Assembly: GCA_048013815.1 (NCBI GenBank)
Contig: CM106585.1
Span: 23,746,001 to 23,810,000 of the forward strand
Direction of reading: 5' to 3'
Source of the DNA: Setoptus koraiensis
Taxonomy: Eukaryota > Animalia > Arthropoda
Length of the DNA: 64,000 bases
Shown here: positions 10,639-22,054 of the stretch, piece after piece
Layout of the letters: each line of letters starts with the position of its first letter
Numbering within the stretch: the stretch's first letter is position 1
Position numbers and translations under genes: made by a program
The notes under the pieces: generated by a model
What the model was told of the DNA's origin: nothing
Database searches by the model: none
Seen by the model: the letters and a program-made list of their open reading frames with translations, nothing else

Positions 10639-10947
10639 GACTGATAATTTAATGTTCACTAGATTGCTGGGTAATTAAACATGCACTTAACTAAATTTTG
10701 TATAAAGTGTATAAACTGAGCAAAATTTAGTTGGTTTCCTCAGTTGGCTTGTGAACATGGAATGTGGAATCGAAAAATGAAGAGACTGATAGTGACTTTC
10801 GAGTAAATCCAAACAAGCAAGCGAATTTGTCGAAAATATACGGCCGAATCTATGTAATAACTGATATTGTTCAAGAGCGTTTTACCTGTTGCTTGATTGG
10901 CGTAAATCATTCGCGATAAATCAAATGATCTGTCGAGTGATGCCAAC

Positions 10948-11248
10948 ATGATTTGTTTATTCGGTCGCACACCGGTGAGAGTTATCAATAAATACGACAT
11001 TCAATATCAGTGCACTCAATCAATTCGTTGTTTGATTTGCAACAAATTGATCTTGGTGTTTGTAGAAACCTGAGACTGGCCTGCAAAATGAAATAGACGA
11101 AGCGATGCTTTAATTTTTACAGAAAGGAAGTGCATTCGTCAAAAATCTATTTTCATTCATCAAGTCATCAGACTACTACAATCTACGTCATCCAGTTTTT
11201 TGTCACATTGGAAGAAAACTATCGAGAATTGATAACTCCCAGAATTGA
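10948..11248 (+). other. Possible spliced small ORF (50 aa) or exons of a non-coding transcript upstream of Nup155
   Basis: ATG at 10948, donor CCG|GTGAGA at 10974/10975, acceptor taatttttacag| at 11122. The splice is in frame and gives MICLFGRTPKGSAFVKNLFSFIKSSDYYNLRHPVFCHIGRKLSRIDNSQN* (stop 11246-11248). No homology recognised. Confidence 0.2.
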
Positions 11249-11662
11249 CTTGCATCAGTTATTTGAATCGTACGCAAACGTGTCGTCGATTGGGCCCGAT
11301 TAAAGTGCATCCCGTAGAGGCGCACCGTTCGTGTTGATCAATTGCTCAGATAACGTGTAACCATGTTACGAGTATTTCGTAGTGGCGATAGAATAGAGGA
11401 ACTGGAAGATTTTGAGTAAAGAGTTTTGTTAGATTTACTTCATTTGACAGTTTTGGTGACAGATTGAAAAACAAATGAGCGACAATCAAATGCATTACAT
11501 GCATCACATTATTTATTACTCCATGCCATAATGTATCAATATTTCCTGTACCACCTATATGTTCACCAGTATTTTTTGTGCGATGATCTAACCATGAAAT
11601 AGCTAGCCTAAAAATTATGAGCCAAAATGATAAGACTCCCTCTGGTGTCAAATCATCGCAAA

Positions 11663-11939
11663 GTGCCATTGATCAGTTTAAACCTGGCGCTATTTATGTG
11701 CCGGCTCGTGCTTGTGCTGAAACAGTGTGCGCACCGCTCACCCACACAGGGGGATGAAGTAGTTTTTGTGAGTTTTGTGACGGGAGTGCTGTTCCCCATA
11801 CATGGCTATGGTAACGATATCGTGCCATAGCATGAGCTAACACATGAGGACGCACTCCACCAGTGCTTGTAAAACTGCTGTATATTGCGCGGGCCTCTCC
11901 CTCACTACATTATAGTAAAACTATTGTATATCAATGCAC
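11663..11939 (+). ncRNA. Unknown structured RNA element, copy B (paralogue of 19775-20000)
   Basis: Shares ordered blocks with copy A: AGTTYAAA, GGCGC, CGGCTCGTG, GAAA, GTGCGCAC, GCTCACCC, AAGTAG, TGTGA, TTCCCCAT, AGCTAACACA, GCGCGGGCCTCTC. Helices: TGGCGCT(11685-91)/AGTGCTG(11785-91), GGCTCGTG(11703-10)/CGCGGGCC(11888-95), GCTATGG/CCATAGC hairpin (11805-31), and terminal pairing GTGC.ATTGAT.AGTTT / AAACT...ATCAATGCAC. Confidence 0.65.
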
Positions 11940-12120
11940 TTATAAGGTGTAGATAATCTCGGTTAACAATTCACGACATCAGTTGACTAGTTTCACATCT
12001 AATTATTAATTATTATTTCTATCAAACGAAAGATAGCTACTGTATCATCAGCGGCATAAGTTGCATCCTGATACTTTGAATTAGTCGACATTGTAGTGGC
12101 TTCATACTCGTTACACCAAC

Positions 12121-15100
12121 ATGGCCGCCGCAACATATAGGATAGAACAATATATACAAAGTGACTCTGAATTTAGATCACTATCCGATCTATTACAGGT
12201 AACACAGGACAAAGCGCCCACTGTTAGCGGCCTCAAAGATGTCGATTATCCGAATTCTGTAGACAATAGTAATAGGGTGCCATTAACATCAAACATAACT
12301 ACAGTGCCTACACCAGCTGATTTAGTAGAACAATTCACTAATATGGAACACAATTGCGAGCTTGGCCTCTTCACAGAGATCTCACGAGCCTGGCTTTCAG
12401 TAGATAGTAATATATTCTTATGGGCTTACGATAATGGTGGCGATGTTGCCTATTACGATGGCATTGAACAAACTATAATCGGAGTCTGTCTGGCCAAACC
12501 TAAACCAAAAGTGTTCAAGCCTCATATTAAATATTTACTTTGTCTTACAACAGCATCAGAGATCACCCTACTAGCTGTCACTTTCAATGATGATAATCCA
12601 AATCCGAGCAATTCAGCTGTATTATTAGTGCCAGATCCCGTATTTAGAATAGCCACGGATAATGTCAGATTGACAATTATTGCCGGTACAGATGATGGGC
12701 GTATATTTCTTGGCGGGCACGATGGGTGTCTATATGAGATCGTTTATCAAGCAGAAAGTGGATGGTTTGGACGCAGTTGCCGCAAGGTAAACCATTCAAC
12801 CAGTTTGTTATCTTATGTGATGCCATCATTCCTCAATTTTAGTGAATTAGAGCCAATTGTTCAAATAGAGATCGATAACGAAAGACACCTGCTATACACG
12901 CGCTCCATCAAAAGTACCATTCAAATGTTCGATCTTGGTTATGATGGTCAACAAATGTCACGAGTGGTGTCCAGACCTCTGTCCAGCATAGTGAATCAAG
13001 CGTCATGCATAGCAAGAACAATAGATACTAATAATTTTAAGCCAATAATCAGTATAAAAGCTCTGTATAAAAGTGAATCTAGCAAGTTACATTTGATGGC
13101 CATGACTCAAGCAGGTGTGAGACTCTACTTCGCTGCCAAAGGTGATAGGCCCACCGGATTGGAACTCGTTCATGTTCGTTTGCCTCCAGGATTTACGCCA
13201 TCGTCGATTATGCAAAAACCAGCAGCAGTTAATAATCTCTACTATAAAGACAGCACTCTCATAATGACTAGTTTCCAATCAGAAGATAAGGATTTCCTTT
13301 GGGTATTGAGCAACGACGCTTACATTCATGAAAATCAAATGATGGAAACCTTCAATGTAAACTCTCTTAATGGGAGAGTTTGGACTGTCTCAGAGGAAAT
13401 AAATCCAACCCCAGTGATGGCACGTTTCGCCAATAATAAGCCACCCGCGTTAGCTACCCAACATTTTGAAGATAGAAGAAAATTTGTATTACTAACATCA
13501 CAAGGAGTTCACATTATCTACAAGAATAGACCAATTGATTTGCTTAGTAGACTTCTCATGGAAAATCAAAATCACGAGGCGCTGCCCGTACGACAGTTTT
13601 TCCAATCAATCAAACTATCTGAGGCCTGTCTAACCAGTCTGATTATTGCGTGCACTTCTAAGCTACCTCAAGAGAGTCAACTCGCTGAATTGGCAACTCT
13701 AGCTTTCTTCAGATATGGTTCTGGTCCTCGTGCCTTCAGAGTGCCTTCAATGTCCACCCCCATTAGTTCTCCAAATCAATCACTCTTGCCTGCCAACATG
13801 TCCCCGATAGCATCTTTCATGAATACGTCCGCAAATATGCCAGGCGATAGAATGGAAGTACAATTCAGTGCCAGGCACGATGCAATCTTTTTATATCTAG
13901 CCAGGATACTAAGACCTCTCTGGCATGTGCGAGTTTCCATGTCACAATCAATCAGTCCAGGACACGATTGCTTAGTCAACACCGTTGAGTTGGACGAGCT
14001 ATCGCTTTATCTAAAACGATTGACCGAATTGAAACAATTTCTCTCATCCAGCATGCAGTTTAACACGGATAACAACCTCAGCGCCAATCTCAAAACAAAT
14101 AGCAGAAATGAGCCGGCGGATGCTGCTTCTCAGGAGCGTGAATCTACTAATGCTATGTCGCAGTTATTGGATCGGTGCACCGAAGTCATGCATCTTTATC
14201 GATTATTGTGTGAGCATCAATTTGATTTGATATGTACAAACTTGCCTGTGGAAAAGCAGAATCAGCTGCACAGTATGACATTCAGAGACTTGATCACAAC
14301 GGAACACGATATGACAACCTTACTCGCCGGCGCCCTGGTCCGTCGATATCTCGATGACAATATAACAACTGACAGCATCAGTAGGAAACTACATGATGTC
14401 TGCCCATCTATTTTCAAGCAAGAAAATGCTCTATACGCAAAAGCAAATGAAATTATAATAAGAGCTCAGAATCTAACAGATAAGACAGATCGGGATAGAA
14501 TGATCAATGAGGCTGTTAATCTTTTCAAAAAAATAGGTGCTAGAATTAACTTGCAAAACGCTTGTGATCTTCTTCATTCCACCAGAGCCTATAGAAATAT
14601 AGTAGATCTCTGCCTCTATATAGCCGACAAGCGCGATCCTCAAAACCTAACTAGTTATTATCACAAAACTCTTATGCAAGCCAATCAAGATGGGAATTTT
14701 CAGAATGGAGACGATAGTAATAGCCAAGCAGCACAAGCAGCTCATGGTCGTGTTGATTGTTACATGAAAGTAATAGAGACATTAGATCGATTGATGAACA
14801 TCAGCAAATCTGCAATCCTAACACCTATGAATCTGAGTAATCACGAAGAACTAATGAACCACCATAATCAAGTAGTAAGTGTAGAGGACGCTAAATCTGC
14901 TTTCGACGACGTCATGAATTCGGCCGTTCAATCTACCGATGAATTATTTCACAATAAATTGTATGAATGGCTTTGCGAAAATAACCTATCCTCCAAACTT
15001 TTGGACCTACAATCCGCATACCTTGAGAATTTTCTCAAAAAGAAGACTTCATCATCCCTCGAATCAATCCCTTACTTGGACCTGATGTGGAGATACTATG

Positions 15101-16038
15101 AGAAACAAAACTCTTTCGCTCAAGCAGCTCAAGTTCTTGAAAGACTCGCCAGCAAGGCTACGGTTGACTACGATCTTCATAAACGTTTAGAATATCTATC
15201 TAGAGCTATAATATGTATGCAAAGTACAAACCCCGGCATGCTGGTTACTGATAAATTACAAAAATCTACACCTGGAGAATTTTTACACAAACTCGAGGAA
15301 AAAATGGAAGTTGCCCGAATACAGCACCATATTTTAGAGAAAATAAAAGATCTTCCTGAGACAACCTTCACTCAAGAAGCGATAAATCATCTCAACTACG
15401 AATTATTAGATTTATCGCAATTGTATGAAGATTTTGCGGAAAAATTCAAACTGCAAGATTGTCAGTTGTCCATATTGAAAAGCGCAGGTCACTATGACAA
15501 AGCGTTGATTGAAAACTTATGGCAGAGCATCATGGATAATATTATCCGCGAGTGTTCACACGAGCCTGCAGAGACACAAATCGTCCTATTGAGTAACAAA
15601 ATCAAGAATCTTGCGCATGAATTTATACCATCGGACAGATATTTTCCCGCATTTTTCGTACTTTCCTATTTGGAGTATAGGACACACCATCTTGAGAATA
15701 CTCAATGGATACACAAAACTTTCATGGAAGTAGGTTTCTCATTCATCAATCTATTAGACATATACCATAAATTTTACAAGTCGAGAGACCAAATGACCTA
15801 CTGGCCAAAAAAAGCCATTCACCTTCTTACTGTGCTAGCAAATCTCATCGGGAGATTCGCCAGCAAGCCCTCTGAGTTTCCTGCCCTCCAAAGACCTACA
15901 ATTGCGAGCACTTGTTTAGATGTGATATGCGGATATCTTATAGACCTACAAACAATGAGCTCTGCTGATAGAGACGTGAGAAGATTACAAGACGAATACA
16001 GAAATTTGCAGGCTCGGATAAATCTTTTACATTTATAG
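12121..16038 (+). CDS. Nup155: Nuclear pore complex protein Nup155 (Nup154/Nup170 family), 1305 aa, intronless
   Basis: Family motifs LGLFTEISRAWLSVDSNIFLWAY, YYDGIEQTIIGVCLAKPKPKVFKPHIKYLLCLTT, GRIFLGGHDGCLYEIVYQAESGWFGRSCRKVNHS, FSARHDAIFLYLARILRPLW, DELFHNKLYEWL and LSQLYEDFAEKFKLQDCQLSIL. Length is typical for the family. Confidence 0.97.
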   Translation: MAAATYRIEQYIQSDSEFRSLSDLLQVTQDKAPTVSGLKDVDYPNSVDNSNRVPLTSNITTVPTPADLVEQFTNMEHNCELGLFTEISRAWLSVDSNIFLWAYDNGGDVAYYDGIEQTIIGVCLAKPKPKVFKPHIKYLLCLTTASEITLLAVTFNDDNPNPSNSAVLLVPDPVFRIATDNVRLTIIAGTDDGRIFLGGHDGCLYEIVYQAESGWFGRSCRKVNHSTSLLSYVMPSFLNFSELEPIVQIEIDNERHLLYTRSIKSTIQMFDLGYDGQQMSRVVSRPLSSIVNQASCIARTIDTNNFKPIISIKALYKSESSKLHLMAMTQAGVRLYFAAKGDRPTGLELVHVRLPPGFTPSSIMQKPAAVNNLYYKDSTLIMTSFQSEDKDFLWVLSNDAYIHENQMMETFNVNSLNGRVWTVSEEINPTPVMARFANNKPPALATQHFEDRRKFVLLTSQGVHIIYKNRPIDLLSRLLMENQNHEALPVRQFFQSIKLSEACLTSLIIACTSKLPQESQLAELATLAFFRYGSGPRAFRVPSMSTPISSPNQSLLPANMSPIASFMNTSANMPGDRMEVQFSARHDAIFLYLARILRPLWHVRVSMSQSISPGHDCLVNTVELDELSLYLKRLTELKQFLSSSMQFNTDNNLSANLKTNSRNEPADAASQERESTNAMSQLLDRCTEVMHLYRLLCEHQFDLICTNLPVEKQNQLHSMTFRDLITTEHDMTTLLAGALVRRYLDDNITTDSISRKLHDVCPSIFKQENALYAKANEIIIRAQNLTDKTDRDRMINEAVNLFKKIGARINLQNACDLLHSTRAYRNIVDLCLYIADKRDPQNLTSYYHKTLMQANQDGNFQNGDDSNSQAAQAAHGRVDCYMKVIETLDRLMNISKSAILTPMNLSNHEELMNHHNQVVSVEDAKSAFDDVMNSAVQSTDELFHNKLYEWLCENNLSSKLLDLQSAYLENFLKKKTSSSLESIPYLDLMWRYYEKQNSFAQAAQVLERLASKATVDYDLHKRLEYLSRAIICMQSTNPGMLVTDKLQKSTPGEFLHKLEEKMEVARIQHHILEKIKDLPETTFTQEAINHLNYELLDLSQLYEDFAEKFKLQDCQLSILKSAGHYDKALIENLWQSIMDNIIRECSHEPAETQIVLLSNKIKNLAHEFIPSDRYFPAFFVLSYLEYRTHHLENTQWIHKTFMEVGFSFINLLDIYHKFYKSRDQMTYWPKKAIHLLTVLANLIGRFASKPSEFPALQRPTIASTCLDVICGYLIDLQTMSSADRDVRRLQDEYRNLQARINLLHL

Positions 16039-16061
16039 TAGCAGCTTTTGTAATATACGTT

Positions 16062-16115
16062 ATTAAAAATTCAATTTCGCTCTGATAATATACTGATTTT
16101 GACAGATGATTTATT
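16062..16115. terminator. Back-to-back candidate polyadenylation signals of the convergent Nup155 and PCID2 genes
   Basis: ATTAAA on + at 16062-16067 and AATAAA on - at 16110-16115, inside the 110-bp gap between the two stop codons. Confidence 0.5.
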
Positions 16116-16148
16116 TTGCAGATGGATGAATGACTTTTTGAGTGTTCG

Positions 16149-17378
16149 TTAAACCTCTTTTGCAGCATTTATCTCTGCCAACGGGGGGAAGGGGTTAGAT
16201 TTTGAGACCACTACCATTTGGTGATTGAGGGATATATACCCTTTAATCTTGCCGTCATAAATAAGATTGGCCAAGATGCAGTGAACTTCTTCCGTTTTGA
16301 CGTCTTGTTGATTTTGAACAATCCTGACTGCTGCACAAAAGGCCTTAATAGGAATAGTATGAGTCTGCATAACTAGTTTCACTTTCTTGAAAATATTTCT
16401 GTATGTTAAAATTCTGAGTTTTTCCACTATGAGATATATTCCGTATTTCCAGAAGAAATCGTAATTGAATTCTAGTGCCTCATCCAGGTCTCCAACCCTT
16501 CCATTGATAACAGCTTGTTTGACCGATTTGAACTGGGGTAGATTATAGTGATTCATGAGATCTTCACTTGGCATATGACCCATGAGCATTTTCACAGGTA
16601 TGAGAAATATGAGAGTCAATCTTTTGTGTTTGTACATTTGGGGTTGACAATTTTTAAAAACAAATTCTAGGAGAGTCTCAGCTTTCACCACATTAGAATC
16701 AAATAGAGATTTGATCCCCAGATAGTAGTTGTAAGTCACTTGTTGAGCTAAGCTAAAATGATTGAAAATGTCAGCATTGTCAAGGGCCTTGATCAGCGGC
16801 TTACAAAGATGTAACTTGTTGATCTTGAAGTAAATCTTGAATAATTGATTTATTATTATGATCATTCCTATTCTCTTAGAGTTTTCAAATGATGATCTCG
16901 AATCTGTTGCACATATTCTGAACAGTCCCATGAGAGAATCGGCAGCTTTTTCAGAATTTATATCAGGTTTGTGAGCCGTGTTTGGAAATTGTTGATGATT
17001 AGATGTTTTCCCAGATTCTATAGCTAATTTCCTGAGATCGACCGATTGCTTGTGCATGAGTGTTATGCACCAATTTTCCTCGCGTTGACTTTGCAACAAT
17101 TTTGTCAAGTCATTAATAGAGGAGAGTTTTTCATTGAAGGCATTCTGACAGTCTCCTTTTCTGAGTAATTCCAACACTTTCAAGTGAGAATCTATAAGCT
17201 GGTCCCAATAACTTGGAAGTTGGACGTTTTTTGGGCGCTGAGATCCCTTTTGTAAGATTCTATCAATATTTGTCAGGTCACACAAATCTAAACTGAGTAA
17301 CTTGGCCACCTCTTCTCCATTCTTACTGTAAATGGCTCGTTTAAGAAACTCGTAGTAGTCTGGTAAGCTTGATATCAT
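16149..17378 (-). CDS. PCID2: PCI domain-containing protein 2 (TREX-2 subunit, Thp1/CSN12 family), about 409 aa, intronless
   Basis: ATG at 17378 (the track's start at 17408 is a TTG). Motifs FRICATDSRSSFENSKRIGM, NQLFKIYFKINKLHLCKPLIKAL, AQQVTYNYYLG, KRLTLIFLIPVKMLMGHMP, GIYLIVEKLRILTYRNIFKKV and VHCILANLIYDGKIKGYISLNHQMVVVSKSNPFP. Confidence 0.97.
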   Translation of the reverse strand: MISSLPDYYEFLKRAIYSKNGEEVAKLLSLDLCDLTNIDRILQKGSQRPKNVQLPSYWDQLIDSHLKVLELLRKGDCQNAFNEKLSSINDLTKLLQSQREENWCITLMHKQSVDLRKLAIESGKTSNHQQFPNTAHKPDINSEKAADSLMGLFRICATDSRSSFENSKRIGMIIIINQLFKIYFKINKLHLCKPLIKALDNADIFNHFSLAQQVTYNYYLGIKSLFDSNVVKAETLLEFVFKNCQPQMYKHKRLTLIFLIPVKMLMGHMPSEDLMNHYNLPQFKSVKQAVINGRVGDLDEALEFNYDFFWKYGIYLIVEKLRILTYRNIFKKVKLVMQTHTIPIKAFCAAVRIVQNQQDVKTEEVHCILANLIYDGKIKGYISLNHQMVVVSKSNPFPPLAEINAAKEV

Positions 17379-17667
17379 TTTGATAGGATCGTTGGACCAA
17401 TTGTGCAAGAGTGGCTGCGATGATGTTGATTCTAATAGTCAGTTTTTATTATAATTACTATTGTTATTAAGTGACAATATAAACAGACAATCATGAAAGA
17501 TCCTACAACACAATAAGCGTGTGAAGAGTTGTGGAAAGCATACAAAAGCGTCAATATTAGCTGTCATGAGTGGATATGTTTGATTCCGATAAACATGTGT
17601 TCTTAAATCGTGACTAAAATACAAGTAAAATCTGGCGCGAAAATCAAGTTTCCTCGCACGTCGTCAT

Positions 17668-18678
17668 TCACTGTTTGGACTGAGCTTTTGGTTTGGGTGG
17701 GCTTGTGTTTTTTGTGGTCAAGCGTTGGAATGAATCTCCAAGATCATCGACCGCAGCTCTATCAGCATGTTGTCTTTGTTCACCGCTTGGCCCTGCTTGA
17801 ACATGTAGTTCCTCTTCTCGAGCAGGCCTTTCCCCTTCCGGTATGGTTTCCACGACCCTCTTGAATTCCTTCATATCCTTACTGAACTTTCTTGCCTTCG
17901 CTAAAAGATTTGCTCGAGTACAATTTCCAGTCTCATTGTACTTGTGATAATCGCACAGAAAAGCCTCATCATATTCGTGGCCCGAGGTGTTACCAAGTTC
18001 CTTTTCCGCCACCGCCTTGCCTATGATTGAGGTGAAAAAGCCTATGCGTCTGGAGACACAAACATAAAGATCATGTATGCTGTAGATTTTAAGCGGCTTG
18101 TACTTTTTTCTATTACCATGAGGTCCACAAACCTGATCTATCAGCCATTTGATGCTGCCTATATCTTGGCGAATGTGCTTCAGTGACAATGAAAATAAAG
18201 TGTAGTCCGACGAAACCAACTGATAGATTTTAGACAAAACTTCATGGTACTTATCGCGTGGCGTATCGAATGGTCCTTCTTGTATTCCCGCAATCTTGTG
18301 ATTTGGTTGATGCTTCAATGCCTCAACCCTACAGTTTCGTGCCGGTTCTCCTGGGTGAAACATGAAGTGATGTACAACATAATCTTTTTCTTCCATATCT
18401 ATAGACCATTTTGTAACTGTCAATTCCACCGGCATGTATAAATCACGAATGTAATTAGGGATATGCTCTTGGTCGCTATCAACAACTGCGCACAGTACGT
18501 TAGTGCTTATAGTGACAAAATTTTTCTTGAAAATATCTTTTTTATATTGTGCGACATAGTCTTCGGCACATTTCCTGTATTTGACTCGAGTATCGTCATA
18601 ATGTACAATATCATGTTCTCCCGGTCCGGGCGCCCAATCTGCTTCGTGGGCCTCTGCAACTGATCCCAGTGGAGCCAT
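17668..18678 (-). CDS. mael: Maelstrom (piRNA pathway, MAEL domain), about 336 aa, intronless, without a complete HMG box
   Basis: MAEL-domain pattern FVTISTNVLC...YMPVELTVTKWSI...HHFMFHPGEP and C-terminal FLCDYH...GNC. The Zn-binding E-C-H-C residues are present. First ATG at 18678 (the track's start at 18699 is a TTG). Confidence 0.8.
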   Translation of the reverse strand: MAPLGSVAEAHEADWAPGPGEHDIVHYDDTRVKYRKCAEDYVAQYKKDIFKKNFVTISTNVLCAVVDSDQEHIPNYIRDLYMPVELTVTKWSIDMEEKDYVVHHFMFHPGEPARNCRVEALKHQPNHKIAGIQEGPFDTPRDKYHEVLSKIYQLVSSDYTLFSLSLKHIRQDIGSIKWLIDQVCGPHGNRKKYKPLKIYSIHDLYVCVSRRIGFFTSIIGKAVAEKELGNTSGHEYDEAFLCDYHKYNETGNCTRANLLAKARKFSKDMKEFKRVVETIPEGERPAREEELHVQAGPSGEQRQHADRAAVDDLGDSFQRLTTKNTSPPKPKAQSKQ

Positions 18679-19385
18679 GTGTGATAAAAATAATGTCAAC
18701 GTGACAAAATGTGCGACAAAAAGCTAGATGGCTTGTTCCGATAGAGTAGTTATGTAGTTTGGCAGCAACAACAGGTTGACTAAAAAGTGAGAAATGAACT
18801 GACGAGAAAAATTAGATGGCCACTCTATGTAAAGGACATTTGGCACGTTGAAGAGGTTAACAGGACACTGGCGGCTGTTGTCTGGACGAGCATTGATACG
18901 CTGTTATTGTTCGGAGTGGTCGATGTTCAGTGCAACACTGATCGGGTTAGTGTTACAAGCCAGCTTATGTAACAGGGCTGTTGCCAATAGCGAAAGCAGC
19001 GCAAACACACACACACACATACACACACACAAACAAACAAACAAGTATAAATTGTTCAACAAATCACAATTCTAATGTAATGCACGGCGAGTTCTATAAC
19101 TAATGGCGCCAGTCACAGTGACGATAATCAGCCAGCCAGCACGCGGCGGACATTTTTCGATGGACGGACAGCAGCAAATGTCGTCGTTTACAAATGGCGA
19201 AAATGCTAACCATGTTTTTTGAACAAGATGTACATGTAAGCTGACTTGCATGTATTGAGCATCAATTATCGAGGCTGTAGGAGGACAAACTCAAATTGAG
19301 TGTGCAGTCGGCACAAGAGATAGTGACACCGCGTACCATGATAATAGTCTCTCGACGAGTAACTTAATATTCCGTCTCCGTGCTG

Positions 19386-19774
19386 CTAGTCTCACTTATA
19401 CGTGATATAGGGAGAGCCACCTCCCCTAAAACGCTGAGAGGGGAGCTGAGAGTCTAGACCGTTCGCACATGGGAGGCGGCATATTAGACTAGTTGTAGAT
19501 TTTATGAGCCAGTTGAAATGATCATGAAAACGAGCTTCTAATTTCCACGGGTGTATTTATCTTTCATTTGTGTTTTTTGCGAGTTGGAGAGTTGCAGGTC
19601 GAGCCTTTGCTCTCCAGCTTGAGGCGGGCAAAGGGGAGGCGAGAGGAGTGGATTATCAATTTTTAGTTATAGGGTGAGGATAGGAGGTCGCCTCCTGACG
19701 ATGGGAGGTGGGAAAAGTTGACCAACTGGCAAGAGCTGGGAGCTGGATGCCTCCTCAGAATTTTTTTTTTTTTT
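19386..19774 (+). ncRNA. G-rich, hairpin-dense segment ending in T14, directly upstream of RNA copy A
   Basis: CTAGTCT(19386-92)/AGACTAG(19486-92); CTCCCCT(19421-27)/AGGGGAG(19439-45); 11-bp GAGTTGGAGAG(19581-91)/CTCTCCAGCTT(19610-20); AGGAGG-TCG-CCTCCT(19682-96); CACCTCCC(19418-25)/GGGAGGTG(19703-10). Composition is unlike the flanking DNA. Confidence 0.4.
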
Positions 19775-20000
19775 GTTAGTTCAAATCCGGCGCCCTTTCA
19801 AATCGGCTCGTGTGACGAAATGGAGTGCGCACATGCTCACCCTTTCGAGGGGTGTAAGTAGAATTCATCAGTGTTGTGATCAGGGTGCCTTTCCCCATGG
19901 CCGACAAGAGAAATGTGCATGGTTGCACTCAATCCCTAAATGTTCCATCGCTAGGCAGCTAACACACTTGCGCTGCGCGGGCCTCTCACTCGAATAACTA
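19775..20000 (+). ncRNA. Unknown structured RNA element, copy A (paralogue of 11663-11939)
   Basis: Same ordered blocks as copy B. Helices: GGCGCCCT(19789-96)/AGGGTGCC(19882-89), GGCTCGTG(19805-12)/CGCGGGCC(19976-83), CACCCTT-TCG-AGGGGTG hairpin (19838-54), GTGCA-TGGT-TGCAC (19915-28), terminal TAGTT/AACTA. Confidence 0.65.
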
Positions 20001-20578
20001 TATATACTGTGCCGTAATCATTGATTCAAATAACGGTGCTCTTACACACAATCTCATCCAATGTACAATGTATGATAATTTTTCTTTCTCTTTATTTTAC
20101 AAGAGCAACCAGCAATAAAAATAACAGCGATGATAATGACACCTGCTGAACAATAACAACCAGTAAATTTATAAAATATCCAAGGATCACTAACACTAAT
20201 TCGGCATAGAAATATCTCATCTACAATTGTATTTATAATTTGCACTAACCGACAAAATGGTGCTCTGCTAATAATGCCCAAGGAGAGTTACCAATGCATT
20301 TGGATAGTAAAATTCGACTTGAAACATCACTAACTCGGAAAATCATTGTTGATTTATTTCACATGATTCGACCACAACCAAACATTATTTACCGAATCTA
20401 CTAAACACACCCACATATACACACATAAACACTCACACACCCATCACGTTGTTTTGGGCGCCATATTCTTTATATCAATCTATCGCACATCCCAAAACAC
20501 GCGAGTCGCCTCTGCTGCACATTTTCTCTCGTTATATTTATGTTATAATAATCAACATTAATCTTACTAACTACAACC

Positions 20579-22054
20579 ATGTCCATAACTCTGGAAAACG
20601 AGTCAGACCCAACGAGCAACGTTCCTAAAGACATCACTGAAGATGTTTCTATGGAATTTGGTCAAGCTAACACCAACACAAACAATGACAACAAACAAAA
20701 TAATTTAATGGATAACGGAGACGCAACTGAAAGTGACTTTCGTTTTGCAAAGTCCCGCAAGAGAAGCGTAGAGGAAATGCTCACTGGGGACGGATCACAG
20801 TTAATATCTGACAATCACAACAACAATAACTATCAAGAGGATGGCGAAAATTCAATCAACGAAACAGCGAATAGCAATGGAATCAGCAAAAGGCCCAAGC
20901 TGGTGGATGACTCAGAGGAAGATGTCGAAAAAGACTCCATGATGGAAAAAGATCCCGTCGATAAAGATATTGATCAAGTCCTAGAAAGCTTGATTTCTAA
21001 CGACGATGACTCCGGGGAAGTGGAATTGCTCTCTGAAACAAATCACACAATGGAAGAAGGTACAGAACAAATTTCCGATGGAAATCTGGAAGTCCACAAT
21101 CCACATTTAGATACTCTCGAGGTCGAAGTAATGACTGAAAATGCTAAAGAAATTAGCGAATCCACCGACACCGCTAGCGATAGCAAGTCCACTGAAATCC
21201 AACCGAAAGTTAACCGAAGGACTAGAAAGCCTGTGATTGCTCTGCCTAACGTTGAAGGTAAAGAGTTAACTACGCCTATAACTAAGAAGCGAGTTGGACC
21301 CAAATCACGAGTGGGTCCAGCCTCTAAGCGTTCAAAAGCCAAAAGAAAATCCAAAGACGATGATGAAGATGATACGCAAGAGGAATACTACCTCTCCGAC
21401 GCCACATCTACTGAAGCTGAACCAAGACAGGTTAGATCTAGGCCTCAAAGAAATACTGCTCATCGAGAAATGCCTCAACAAGACGATAATGAACCCGATG
21501 ATGTCGAAGAGGAAAAAGAGGACGACGACGACGATGATGAAAGACAGGCTAGCAGCCCTAAAGAATATGTAGTCGATAAAATTCTTGATAAGCGTAATGC
21601 TAAGGATTCCTACGGAAACGAAAGAGTCGAGTACAGGGTTAAATGGGAAGGATATCCCAATTCTGCTAACACCTGGGAACCTTTGTGCAACCTCGCGGAT
21701 TGTGACGATGCCATCAAATCTTACGAGGAAGCTCAAGCCTCTTTAATTTCCAAAAAGAAAACATCTCTGGCAAACGCTTCATCCGGACCCAGACGTCAAG
21801 ACGATAGTGACGATGGTATATCACCTCAAAAGAAACCCAAAAAGGCTACCAGAGAGCCACCTCTAGTTGATAAAAATGAAGTTGAAGTGAAAGAAATCAT
21901 CGGCCTCGCTCGATGTGGCAGCGAGAAATATTTTCTGTTGAGATTCCACGAGTCAAGCAAACGAGAACCTCAGTTCTTACGTTCAACCGTTGCGGCAAGA
22001 TTGATTCCTCTAAAAGTGATTGACTTCTATACAAAAAATGTGGTCTGGAAGTAA
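20579..22054 (+). CDS. HP1-family chromodomain plus chromoshadow protein with a long acidic N-terminal extension, 491 aa, intronless
   Basis: Chromodomain EYVVDKILDKR...VEYRVKWEGYPNSANTWEPLCNLADC with an intact Y/W/Y aromatic cage. C-terminal chromoshadow-like EVKEIIGL...YFLLRF...STVAARLIPLKVIDFYTKNVVW. Orthology to a named HP1 paralogue not assigned. Confidence 0.88.
   Translation: MSITLENESDPTSNVPKDITEDVSMEFGQANTNTNNDNKQNNLMDNGDATESDFRFAKSRKRSVEEMLTGDGSQLISDNHNNNNYQEDGENSINETANSNGISKRPKLVDDSEEDVEKDSMMEKDPVDKDIDQVLESLISNDDDSGEVELLSETNHTMEEGTEQISDGNLEVHNPHLDTLEVEVMTENAKEISESTDTASDSKSTEIQPKVNRRTRKPVIALPNVEGKELTTPITKKRVGPKSRVGPASKRSKAKRKSKDDDEDDTQEEYYLSDATSTEAEPRQVRSRPQRNTAHREMPQQDDNEPDDVEEEKEDDDDDDERQASSPKEYVVDKILDKRNAKDSYGNERVEYRVKWEGYPNSANTWEPLCNLADCDDAIKSYEEAQASLISKKKTSLANASSGPRRQDDSDDGISPQKKPKKATREPPLVDKNEVEVKEIIGLARCGSEKYFLLRFHESSKREPQFLRSTVAARLIPLKVIDFYTKNVVWK

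Follow-up and report, generated by a model that had tools for sequence, protein, structure and literature searches.

Our combined findings suggest that two diverged elements in the window analyzed here, a 64-kb stretch (64,000 nt) of the genome of an eriophyoid (gall/rust) mite, are probably paralogous copies of a single lineage-specific proximal promoter or upstream regulatory module of ~290 bp. The module would span about -260 to +35, with one copy driving Nup155 and the other driving, or having once driven, the neighboring HP1-like chromo gene. Cis-regulatory DNA, and not RNA, is suggested by where the copies lie and how they are oriented, by the spacing of TATA-like and initiator motifs and by the ATG-free leaders. 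The invariant blocks would serve as transcription-factor binding sites, and several of them are GCGC-core palindromes (GGCGCC, GTGCGCAC and TGCGCGGG). Their fixed spacing may reflect a fixed protein assembly on the DNA, and the variable slot may be a free linker. The 3' block would be placed near -55 and a TATA-like element near -30, and the ATG-free leader would begin at a putative start site marked by an ATTCA-type initiator. The module may have been copied by local duplication or through exaptation of a repeat (a solo LTR, for example). The features of the two loci are as follows, with distances given from the predicted start sites:

11675 to 11802, + strand: copy B 5' core, from the alignment and a profile match (E 3e-39), about -263 to -136 relative to the predicted start of Nup155
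11803 to 11885, + strand: copy B variable slot, with no alignable counterpart in copy A
11886 to 11905, + strand: copy B 3' block, TGCGCGGGCCTCTCCCTCAC, about -52 to -33
11910 to 11920, + strand: copy B putative TATA-like element, TTATAGTAAAA, about -27, placed by its spacing
11934 to 11962, + strand: copy B putative initiator-like motif, ATGCA, and the sequence after it, with the A at 11938 taken as +1
11938 to 12120, + strand: ATG-free leader of Nup155 (0 ATGs versus 3.1 expected)
12121 to 16038, + strand: Nup155 coding sequence, 1305 aa, no intron
19778 to 19901, + strand: copy A 5' core, from the alignment and a profile match (E 5e-37)
19902 to 19973, + strand: copy A variable slot, from the alignment
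19974 to 19993, + strand: copy A 3' block, TGCGCGGGCCTCTCACTCGA, about -54 to -35
19999 to 20006, + strand: copy A TATA-like element, TATATATA, -29 from the predicted start
20024 to 20060, + strand: copy A initiator-like motif, ATTCA, and the sequence after it, with its A at 20028
20058 to 20516, + strand: stretch of ~410-460 nt missing from a close relative
20579 to 22054, + strand: HP1-like gene, 491 aa, with Chromo and Chromo-shadow domains

Copy B (11675-11905) and copy A (19778-19993) carry the same blocks in the same order. The block positions given in the original prediction were confirmed in the sequence: AGTTYAAA (19778 in copy A, 11675 in copy B), GGCGC (19789 and 11686), GGCTCGTG (19805 and 11703), GTGCGCAC (19825 and 11727), TTCCCCAT (19891 and 11792) and the last block, GCGCGGGCCTCTC (19975 and 11887). 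The invariant blocks in the 5' core of copy B are AGTTYAAA, GGCGC, GGCTCGT, GAAA, TGCGCAC, AGTAG and TTCCCC. Mean column identity between the two copies is 73% (MAFFT), and the large length differences do sit in the slot between TTCCCCAT and GCGCGGG. Even between copy B and its own orthologue, ACACATGAG(A)GGACG is the only stretch shared in that slot. The homology runs ~70 nt past the 3' limit first proposed, to 20060 in copy A and 11962 in copy B, and this extension comprises the TATA-like element, the ATTCA/ATGCA motif and AATCTC. When the core profile was run against the 64-kb window, the best match after the two copies had an E value of 0.39; GCGCGGGCCTCTC has two exact matches in the window, which contains no related sequence elsewhere. 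Beyond these two, the window yielded no copy, nor did ~94 kb of eriophyoid loci (orthologous sites excluded) or JGI metagenome contigs, and a literature search found nothing relevant to the element.

Both copies are retained at the orthologous sites of a close relative (Logan SRR33593474), where we refer to the orthologue of copy B as L001B and to that of copy A as L005A. Four-fold degenerate sites are 59% identical between the two species. Despite this divergence, 67 of the 120 ungapped core columns (56%) are invariant across all four copies, and we conclude from this comparison that the element is under selection. In the variable slot, only 5 of 30 columns are invariant. The suggestion that this is a functional element under selection, and not a decaying duplication, was thus borne out.

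At all four loci the copy immediately precedes a + strand gene and shares its orientation; in the window, copy B precedes Nup155 and copy A precedes the HP1-like chromo gene. The unit ends 209-262 nt before the downstream ATG at three loci and 592 nt before it at copy A, where the gap contains an insertion of ~410 nt. The corresponding stretch (20058 to 20516) holds 9 ATGs and a second TTTTGGGCGCC + TTTATATC pair, and may be either an intron or an insertion that brought in a proximal promoter. An exact look-up of the window's chromo protein matched no contig. On the other side of copy B, a 107-aa open reading frame on the - strand (11346-11669) falls in no family of Pfam; its N-terminal part lacks conservation at the orthologous locus L001.

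The 3' end of the unit has the layout of a core promoter. GCGCGGG is followed after ~12 nt by the TATA-like element and after a further ~29 nt by ATTCA or ATGCA, so that 51-58 nt separate the 3' block from the initiator-like motif in all four copies. As assigned after viewing the alignment, the TATA-like elements are TATATATA at -29 in copy A, TATAGTAAAA at -27 in copy B, TATACAT/TATATTA at -34/-24 in L005A and only a weak CTATTGTA at -30 in L001B; the initiator-like motif, assigned in the same way, is ATTCA in three copies and ATGCA in one. In copy B this motif is followed by the conserved GGTG..AATCTC, and in copy A by a leader stretch conserved with L005A (AACGGTG..ACACACAATCTCATC); the first 35 nt after the predicted +1 are ~85% conserved between copy A and L005A. 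Between the predicted +1 and the start codon, three loci have 0, 0 and 1 ATGs versus 3.1, 4.3 and 2.8 expected (1 versus 10.2 in total), and counts inside the element itself are 7, 5 and 10. Neighboring genes typically have leaders of 110-220 nt that contain no ATG. No such depletion is seen at copy A, with 10 ATGs from the predicted start to the start codon; the module there is perhaps no longer an active promoter, or an intron would be required.

Promoter vocabulary in this group of mites also speaks for the promoter reading. At seven eriophyoid loci, the 300 nt before ATGs contain GCGC/CGCG words at 2.4 times their density in coding sequence. In distant eriophyoids that lack the 5' core (L002, L006 and L007), a pattern like the 3' block, GCGCG..A[CG]T(A)CGA[AG], precedes the chromo gene in sense orientation. 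It was found 6 times in 158 kb versus 0.46 expected, with four of the six occurrences having served to define the pattern. Four sequencing runs (X7-X10) contain 12-38% of the sampled words of 19300-20500 and are not among the listed holders of 19560-20100, for which 5% was required; this pattern would fit, weakly, transcripts over the flanks and not over the element.

The module resembles TATA-plus-initiator RNA polymerase II promoters in its sense orientation directly upstream of protein genes, its GC-rich block at about -55, its putative AT-rich TATA-like element at about -30, its putative TCA-type initiator and, at three of the four loci, its ATG-free leader. Like those with GC-rich activator sites, it has palindromic GCGC-core blocks. 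Candidate sites may be of the E2F type (TTTSGCGC) or the NRF1 type (GCGCATGCGC), such as those of housekeeping and cell-cycle genes; L001B has ATTTGGCGCCATTT, with TTTTCGCGCC and TTTTGGGCGCC in PCID2 and the proximal chromo region. Unlike such promoters, however, it keeps ~130 nt of ordered blocks at fixed spacing in two promoters that are paralogous although their genes are unrelated. Most promoters are less tightly conserved, and the pattern is reminiscent of RNP-type RNAs. Also counting against a promoter are one genuine double compensatory change in helix a (see below), the weakness of the TATA-like element in L001B, the 10 ATGs in the copy A leader, the assignment of TATA and initiator motifs after the alignment had been seen, and the absence of the 5' core in distant eriophyoids.

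Two further readings were considered. First, both copies may be remnants of a single mobile-element family (solo LTRs, for example) and may have been co-opted as promoters before the species diverged; we consider this unlikely. In this case U3 would carry the TATA and R would begin at the initiator. A self-contained unit of ~290 bp (about -260 to +35) that has its own putative TATA-like element and start site and stands at two genes is LTR-like. Three copies begin with TG(T/A), ACACA lies near the end of the unit, and the element is lineage-specific, its 5' core not being found at the syntenic sites of distant eriophyoids. However, the sequences show neither target-site duplications nor a clear terminal inverted repeat, no related full-length element was seen, no internal-element remnant lies beside either copy, and both copies are under strong purifying selection. 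The low copy number, two in 64 kb and none in the 94 kb of related loci outside orthologous sites, also argues against a repeat. Second, the module could be a member of a promoter or leader cassette family copied between unrelated genes in this streamlined genome, or else an RNA with two paralogues, confined to this lineage and under constraint in its sequence and not its fold, a pair of readings that we regard as improbable.

The elements had been proposed to be a pseudoknotted structured RNA, a reading that our analysis did not support. The pairings of helices a and b are correct for both copies in the window, and helix a shows one double compensatory change, C-G in copy A versus U-A in L005A and copy B. 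Yet the orthologues contribute three mismatches to the two helices and no new compensating change: helix a is interrupted internally by G.A in L005A and also carries C.A in L001B, and helix b, which shows no covariation, is broken by a G.A in L001B. No helix of at least 7 bp could form in all four copies, nor does the + strand outperform the - strand. Alignment folding with RNAalifold, a test with low power on four sequences only, gave an SCI of 0.35 and an energy of -13.3 versus -12.0 ± 3.0 for column shuffles (z -0.45). Nor did it reveal covariation. Single-sequence MFE z-scores against shuffled sequences were not significant (+0.82, -1.59, -0.93 and -0.57). With 56% of core columns invariant but no covariation and no significant fold, the constraint, as far as the alignment tells, is on sequence rather than base pairing. 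Searches against Rfam 15, which had also been suggested, yielded no match anywhere in the window at the gathering score, and no family matched the four copies at E ≤ 10, with only a 15-bit chance match to mir-965 on L005; a tRNA search found none. A known RNA family, such as RNase P/MRP, snRNA, SRP, 7SK, snoRNA, ribozyme or telomerase RNA, was therefore rejected.

These results also bear on whether the copies are two paralogues of a free-standing + strand gene for a non-coding RNA restricted to this lineage, either pseudoknotted or less structured with single strands that bind proteins or targets. In its favor are the ordered invariant blocks at fixed spacing, length changes limited to one slot, strong purifying selection, the helix a double change and G.U pairs that would function on the + strand only; C-to-U changes in L001B (ACCC to ACUU), read from the sequences, still pair with G in a local hairpin. 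Against it stand the broken helices, the unremarkable folding energies and the lack of any Rfam match. In addition, neither an RNA-gene promoter upstream nor a terminator downstream was recognizable, a TATA/initiator and an mRNA leader follow directly after the element, and an internal run of T4-T5 in three copies argues against Pol III. We therefore consider an RNA gene quite unlikely.

The crossing of helices a and b is reminiscent of the nested double pseudoknot of HDV-like ribozymes, for which we looked for P1 (7 bp), P2, a short P3/L3, P1.1 and a catalytic C in J4/2. The two helices cross in P1/P2 order, the variable hairpin slot lies at the place of P4, and in three copies helix a opens with a G.U pair. 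However, ~68 conserved nt lie where a P3/L3 of ~15 nt is expected, there is no GG after helix a for P1.1, both helices are broken in L001B (and helix a in L005A), and no Rfam ribozyme family was among matches at E ≤ 10. Only the P1/P2-like crossing is present, and the copies do not fit an HDV-like ribozyme.

Very unlikely, in our view, is an snRNA-type (DSE-PSE-TATA) promoter for a short RNA that begins at the initiator-like site, which at copy A would be ~56 nt long and end at a T5 run. The upstream core, the -55 block and the -29 TATA resemble the three-part layout of type-3 Pol III promoters at comparable distances (-250/-130, -55 and -30), although the PSE is only putative. A T5 run does lie 56-57 nt after the predicted +1 in copy A and L005A, and the first 35 nt of such an RNA are the conserved ones, but the stretch between them and the T5 run is not conserved between these two copies. 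At copy B no T4 run precedes the Nup155 ATG, and the ATG-free stretch there runs on to the protein start, as for an mRNA leader; no snRNA-like product or Rfam match was found. Finally, an RNA element within long 5' leaders that the Nup155 and chromo mRNAs would carry, such as a shared translational or localization signal, would suit the orientation and sequence constraint, but 5-10 ATGs per copy versus 0-1 in the leader after it, the lack of a stable or conserved fold and the TATA-like element at the 3' end make it highly improbable.

Several further readings were discarded. A coding exon on either strand conflicts with core indels of 1, 4 and 23 nt and with codon-position differences of 14/10/11 and 15/10/13, which lack three-base periodicity. 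No Nup155-like DNA or peptide lies downstream of copy A, as a tandem-duplication remnant carrying the Nup155 5' end to the chromo locus would leave. The T14 run at 19762-19775, which prompted the idea of a retroposed - strand copy, is missing in L005A and borders a window-specific insertion. A candidate telomerase-RNA template (AGCTAACACA) is not retained in L001B or L005A, and no C/D, H/ACA, Sm-site or B-box reading of single blocks is conserved in all four copies.

A promoter would place these elements in an ordinary class of features, a conserved module duplicated ahead of two neighboring genes with nuclear functions, and would thereby remove the window's top candidate for an undescribed RNA. 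In this AT-rich, intron-poor mite genome, GC-rich blockwise conservation just upstream of genes should first be read as promoter. With ~12 ordered blocks kept in two promoters since before the species split (at ~59% neutral identity), the module would offer a compact test case for promoter grammar in the Eriophyoidea and, if promoter copying is common in this genome, may bear on how new regulation originates in streamlined genomes.

Two stretches with the same ordered blocks lie in the window where the original prediction had placed them, as a check of the sequence confirmed. Aligned with MAFFT, they show 73% mean column identity. A core profile matched the window at these two sites only (E 3e-39 and 5e-37; next match, E 0.39), and a profile search of the window and the eriophyoid loci revealed no extra copies. 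The similarity reaches ~70 nt beyond the predicted 3' limit, taking in a TATA-like element and an ATTCA/ATGCA word, up to AATCTC. The source genome is that of an eriophyoid mite, with Aceria tosichella as the best named match of the window's Nup155 (50% identity), and the genes in the window are long single ORFs. Both copies are oriented like the + strand gene downstream of them. A Logan assembly, SRR33593474, represents a close relative (Nup155 identity 97% at the protein level and 87% at the DNA level) and contains both orthologues.

Copies, orthologues and surrounding features
Window 11675-11905, + strand: copy B, between an ORF without a Pfam family and Nup155 (ATG 12121)
Window 19778-19993, + strand: copy A, between a Maelstrom-domain gene (- strand) and an HP1-like Chromo/Chromo-shadow gene (ATG 20579)
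L001:7845-8150: orthologue of copy B in the relative, upstream of Nup155
L005:1631-1895: orthologue of copy A in the relative, between the Maelstrom and Chromo genes
Window 19240-19770: ~530 nt without counterpart in the relative (L005 has ~170 nt here)
Window 20058-20516: insertion of ~410-460 nt in comparison with L005, separating copy A from the chromo ATG
Window 19033-19239, 11171-11315, 11422-11540 and 10743-10873: intergenic patches of 120-210 nt that match the relative at 67-70% identity

The prediction of a functional element under selection was borne out: 67 of the 120 ungapped core columns do not vary among the four copies (variable slot: 5 of 30), whereas at four-fold degenerate sites the two species share only 58-61% identity. 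Core identity is 73-74% between orthologues and 65-68% between paralogues which, together with the degenerate-site divergence and the invariant columns, indicates that the duplication is older than the species split and that both copies are under purifying selection. Some further intergenic patches align as well, so constraint on non-coding DNA is not confined to the element; candidate identities for these patches are unannotated exons, UTRs or additional regulatory DNA. The HP1-like (20579-22054) and Maelstrom (17668-18699) proteins are ~66-68% identical to those of L005, and Nup155 97%; judged from these sequences, the two chromatin/piRNA-pathway genes are fast-evolving. Between an acyltransferase gene and Nup155 the relative is ~3.1 kb longer (L001 4780-7840 versus window 11480-11675), and this extra DNA includes a CRAL_TRIO-domain gene (L001:5040-5753, - strand), which is absent from the window.

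In more distant eriophyoids (Nup155 53-56% identical) the 5' core was not detectable at either site. The order Nup155(+), Maelstrom(-), Chromo(+) is kept across them (window 12121-22054; loci L002, L006 and L007). PCID2 lies between Nup155 and Maelstrom in the window lineage only, with a zinc-finger gene there in L002 and nothing in L006 and L007.

We lean towards reading the element as a duplicated, lineage-specific proximal promoter or upstream module common to Nup155 and the HP1-like gene. A TATA-like element lies ~12 nt past the GCGCGGG block in all four copies, and ATTCA (ATGCA in copy B) follows ~29 nt further on, at 51-58 nt from the block to this initiator-like word. With the A of this word set as +1, the leaders up to the start codon contain 0, 0 and 1 ATGs for copy B, its orthologue and the orthologue of copy A (expected 3.1, 4.3 and 2.8), and the elements themselves contain 7, 5 and 10. 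Neighbouring genes typically have leaders of 110-220 nt that contain no ATG. Copy A is the exception: the insertion at 20058-20516 carries nine ATGs. This insertion, possibly an intron or a proximal promoter of more recent origin, also has a second E2F-like TTTTGGGCGCC plus a TATA-type TTTATATC ~100-130 nt before the ATG; the module would thus precede an intron or have been superseded by a proximal promoter. On the other side of copy A, 19240-19770 has GC-rich hairpin-like sequence at 19570-19760 and a T14 run directly before the copy, and has no further copy in the window or the loci.

In seven eriophyoid loci, GCGC/CGCG words are 2.4-fold denser upstream of ATGs than in coding sequence. Upstream of the chromo gene, L002, L006 and L007 carry a sense-oriented motif similar to the 3' block, GCGCG..A[CG]T(A)CGA[AG]. 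It was found 6 times in 158 kb versus 0.46 expected, a recurrence that is suggestive only, because four matches defined the pattern and one independent match lies in coding sequence. The runs X7-X10 contain 12-38% of the words sampled from 19300-20500 and are not among the runs listed for 19560-20100; we give little weight to this pattern, which would be compatible with transcripts over the flanks and not the element.

An independent RNA gene is improbable but still conceivable. The tight block order and spacing, unusual for a promoter, speak for it. No Rfam family matched either copy or its orthologue, even at E 10, and no tRNA was found. The proposed pseudoknot of crossing helices a and b gained no support, with helices broken in orthologues, ordinary single-sequence folding energies (z-scores +0.82, -1.59, -0.93 and -0.57) and an SCI of 0.35 for the four-core alignment (z -0.45 versus column shuffles, the - strand being no worse). 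RNAalifold assigned the cores an energy of -13.3 kcal/mol, in which the covariation term was positive. In an exhaustive scan no helix of >6 bp was compatible with all four copies, and the longest, of 6 bp, joins invariant GCGC blocks without covariation. Structure-preserving change in helix a holds for one double change (C-G in copy A, U-A in copy B and the orthologue of copy A) and fails at internal mismatches in the orthologues of copy A (G.A) and copy B (C.A). Three copies have an identical helix b, which a G.A mismatch breaks in the orthologue of copy B; the species of L002, L006 and L007, lacking the 5' core, lack any partner for this helix. The conserved GTGCGCAC and GGCGCC blocks are palindromic and so pair with many partners by construction. 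Indels of 1, 4 and 23 nt, together with the lack of three-base periodicity, rule out a coding element.

A Nup155 remnant was looked for beside copy A and none was found, and no target-site duplications were seen at the copies. The proposed promoter module could have been copied by local duplication or have its origin in an exapted repeat, for instance a solo LTR. A classic E2F-type sequence, TTTTCGCGCC, lies at ~17630-17645 in the short spacer adjoining the Maelstrom gene 3' end, ~260 nt upstream of where PCID2 starts on the - strand. Among the module blocks are putative E2F- or NRF1-like cores. The blocks of the module common to Nup155 and the HP1-like gene would be factor-binding sites.
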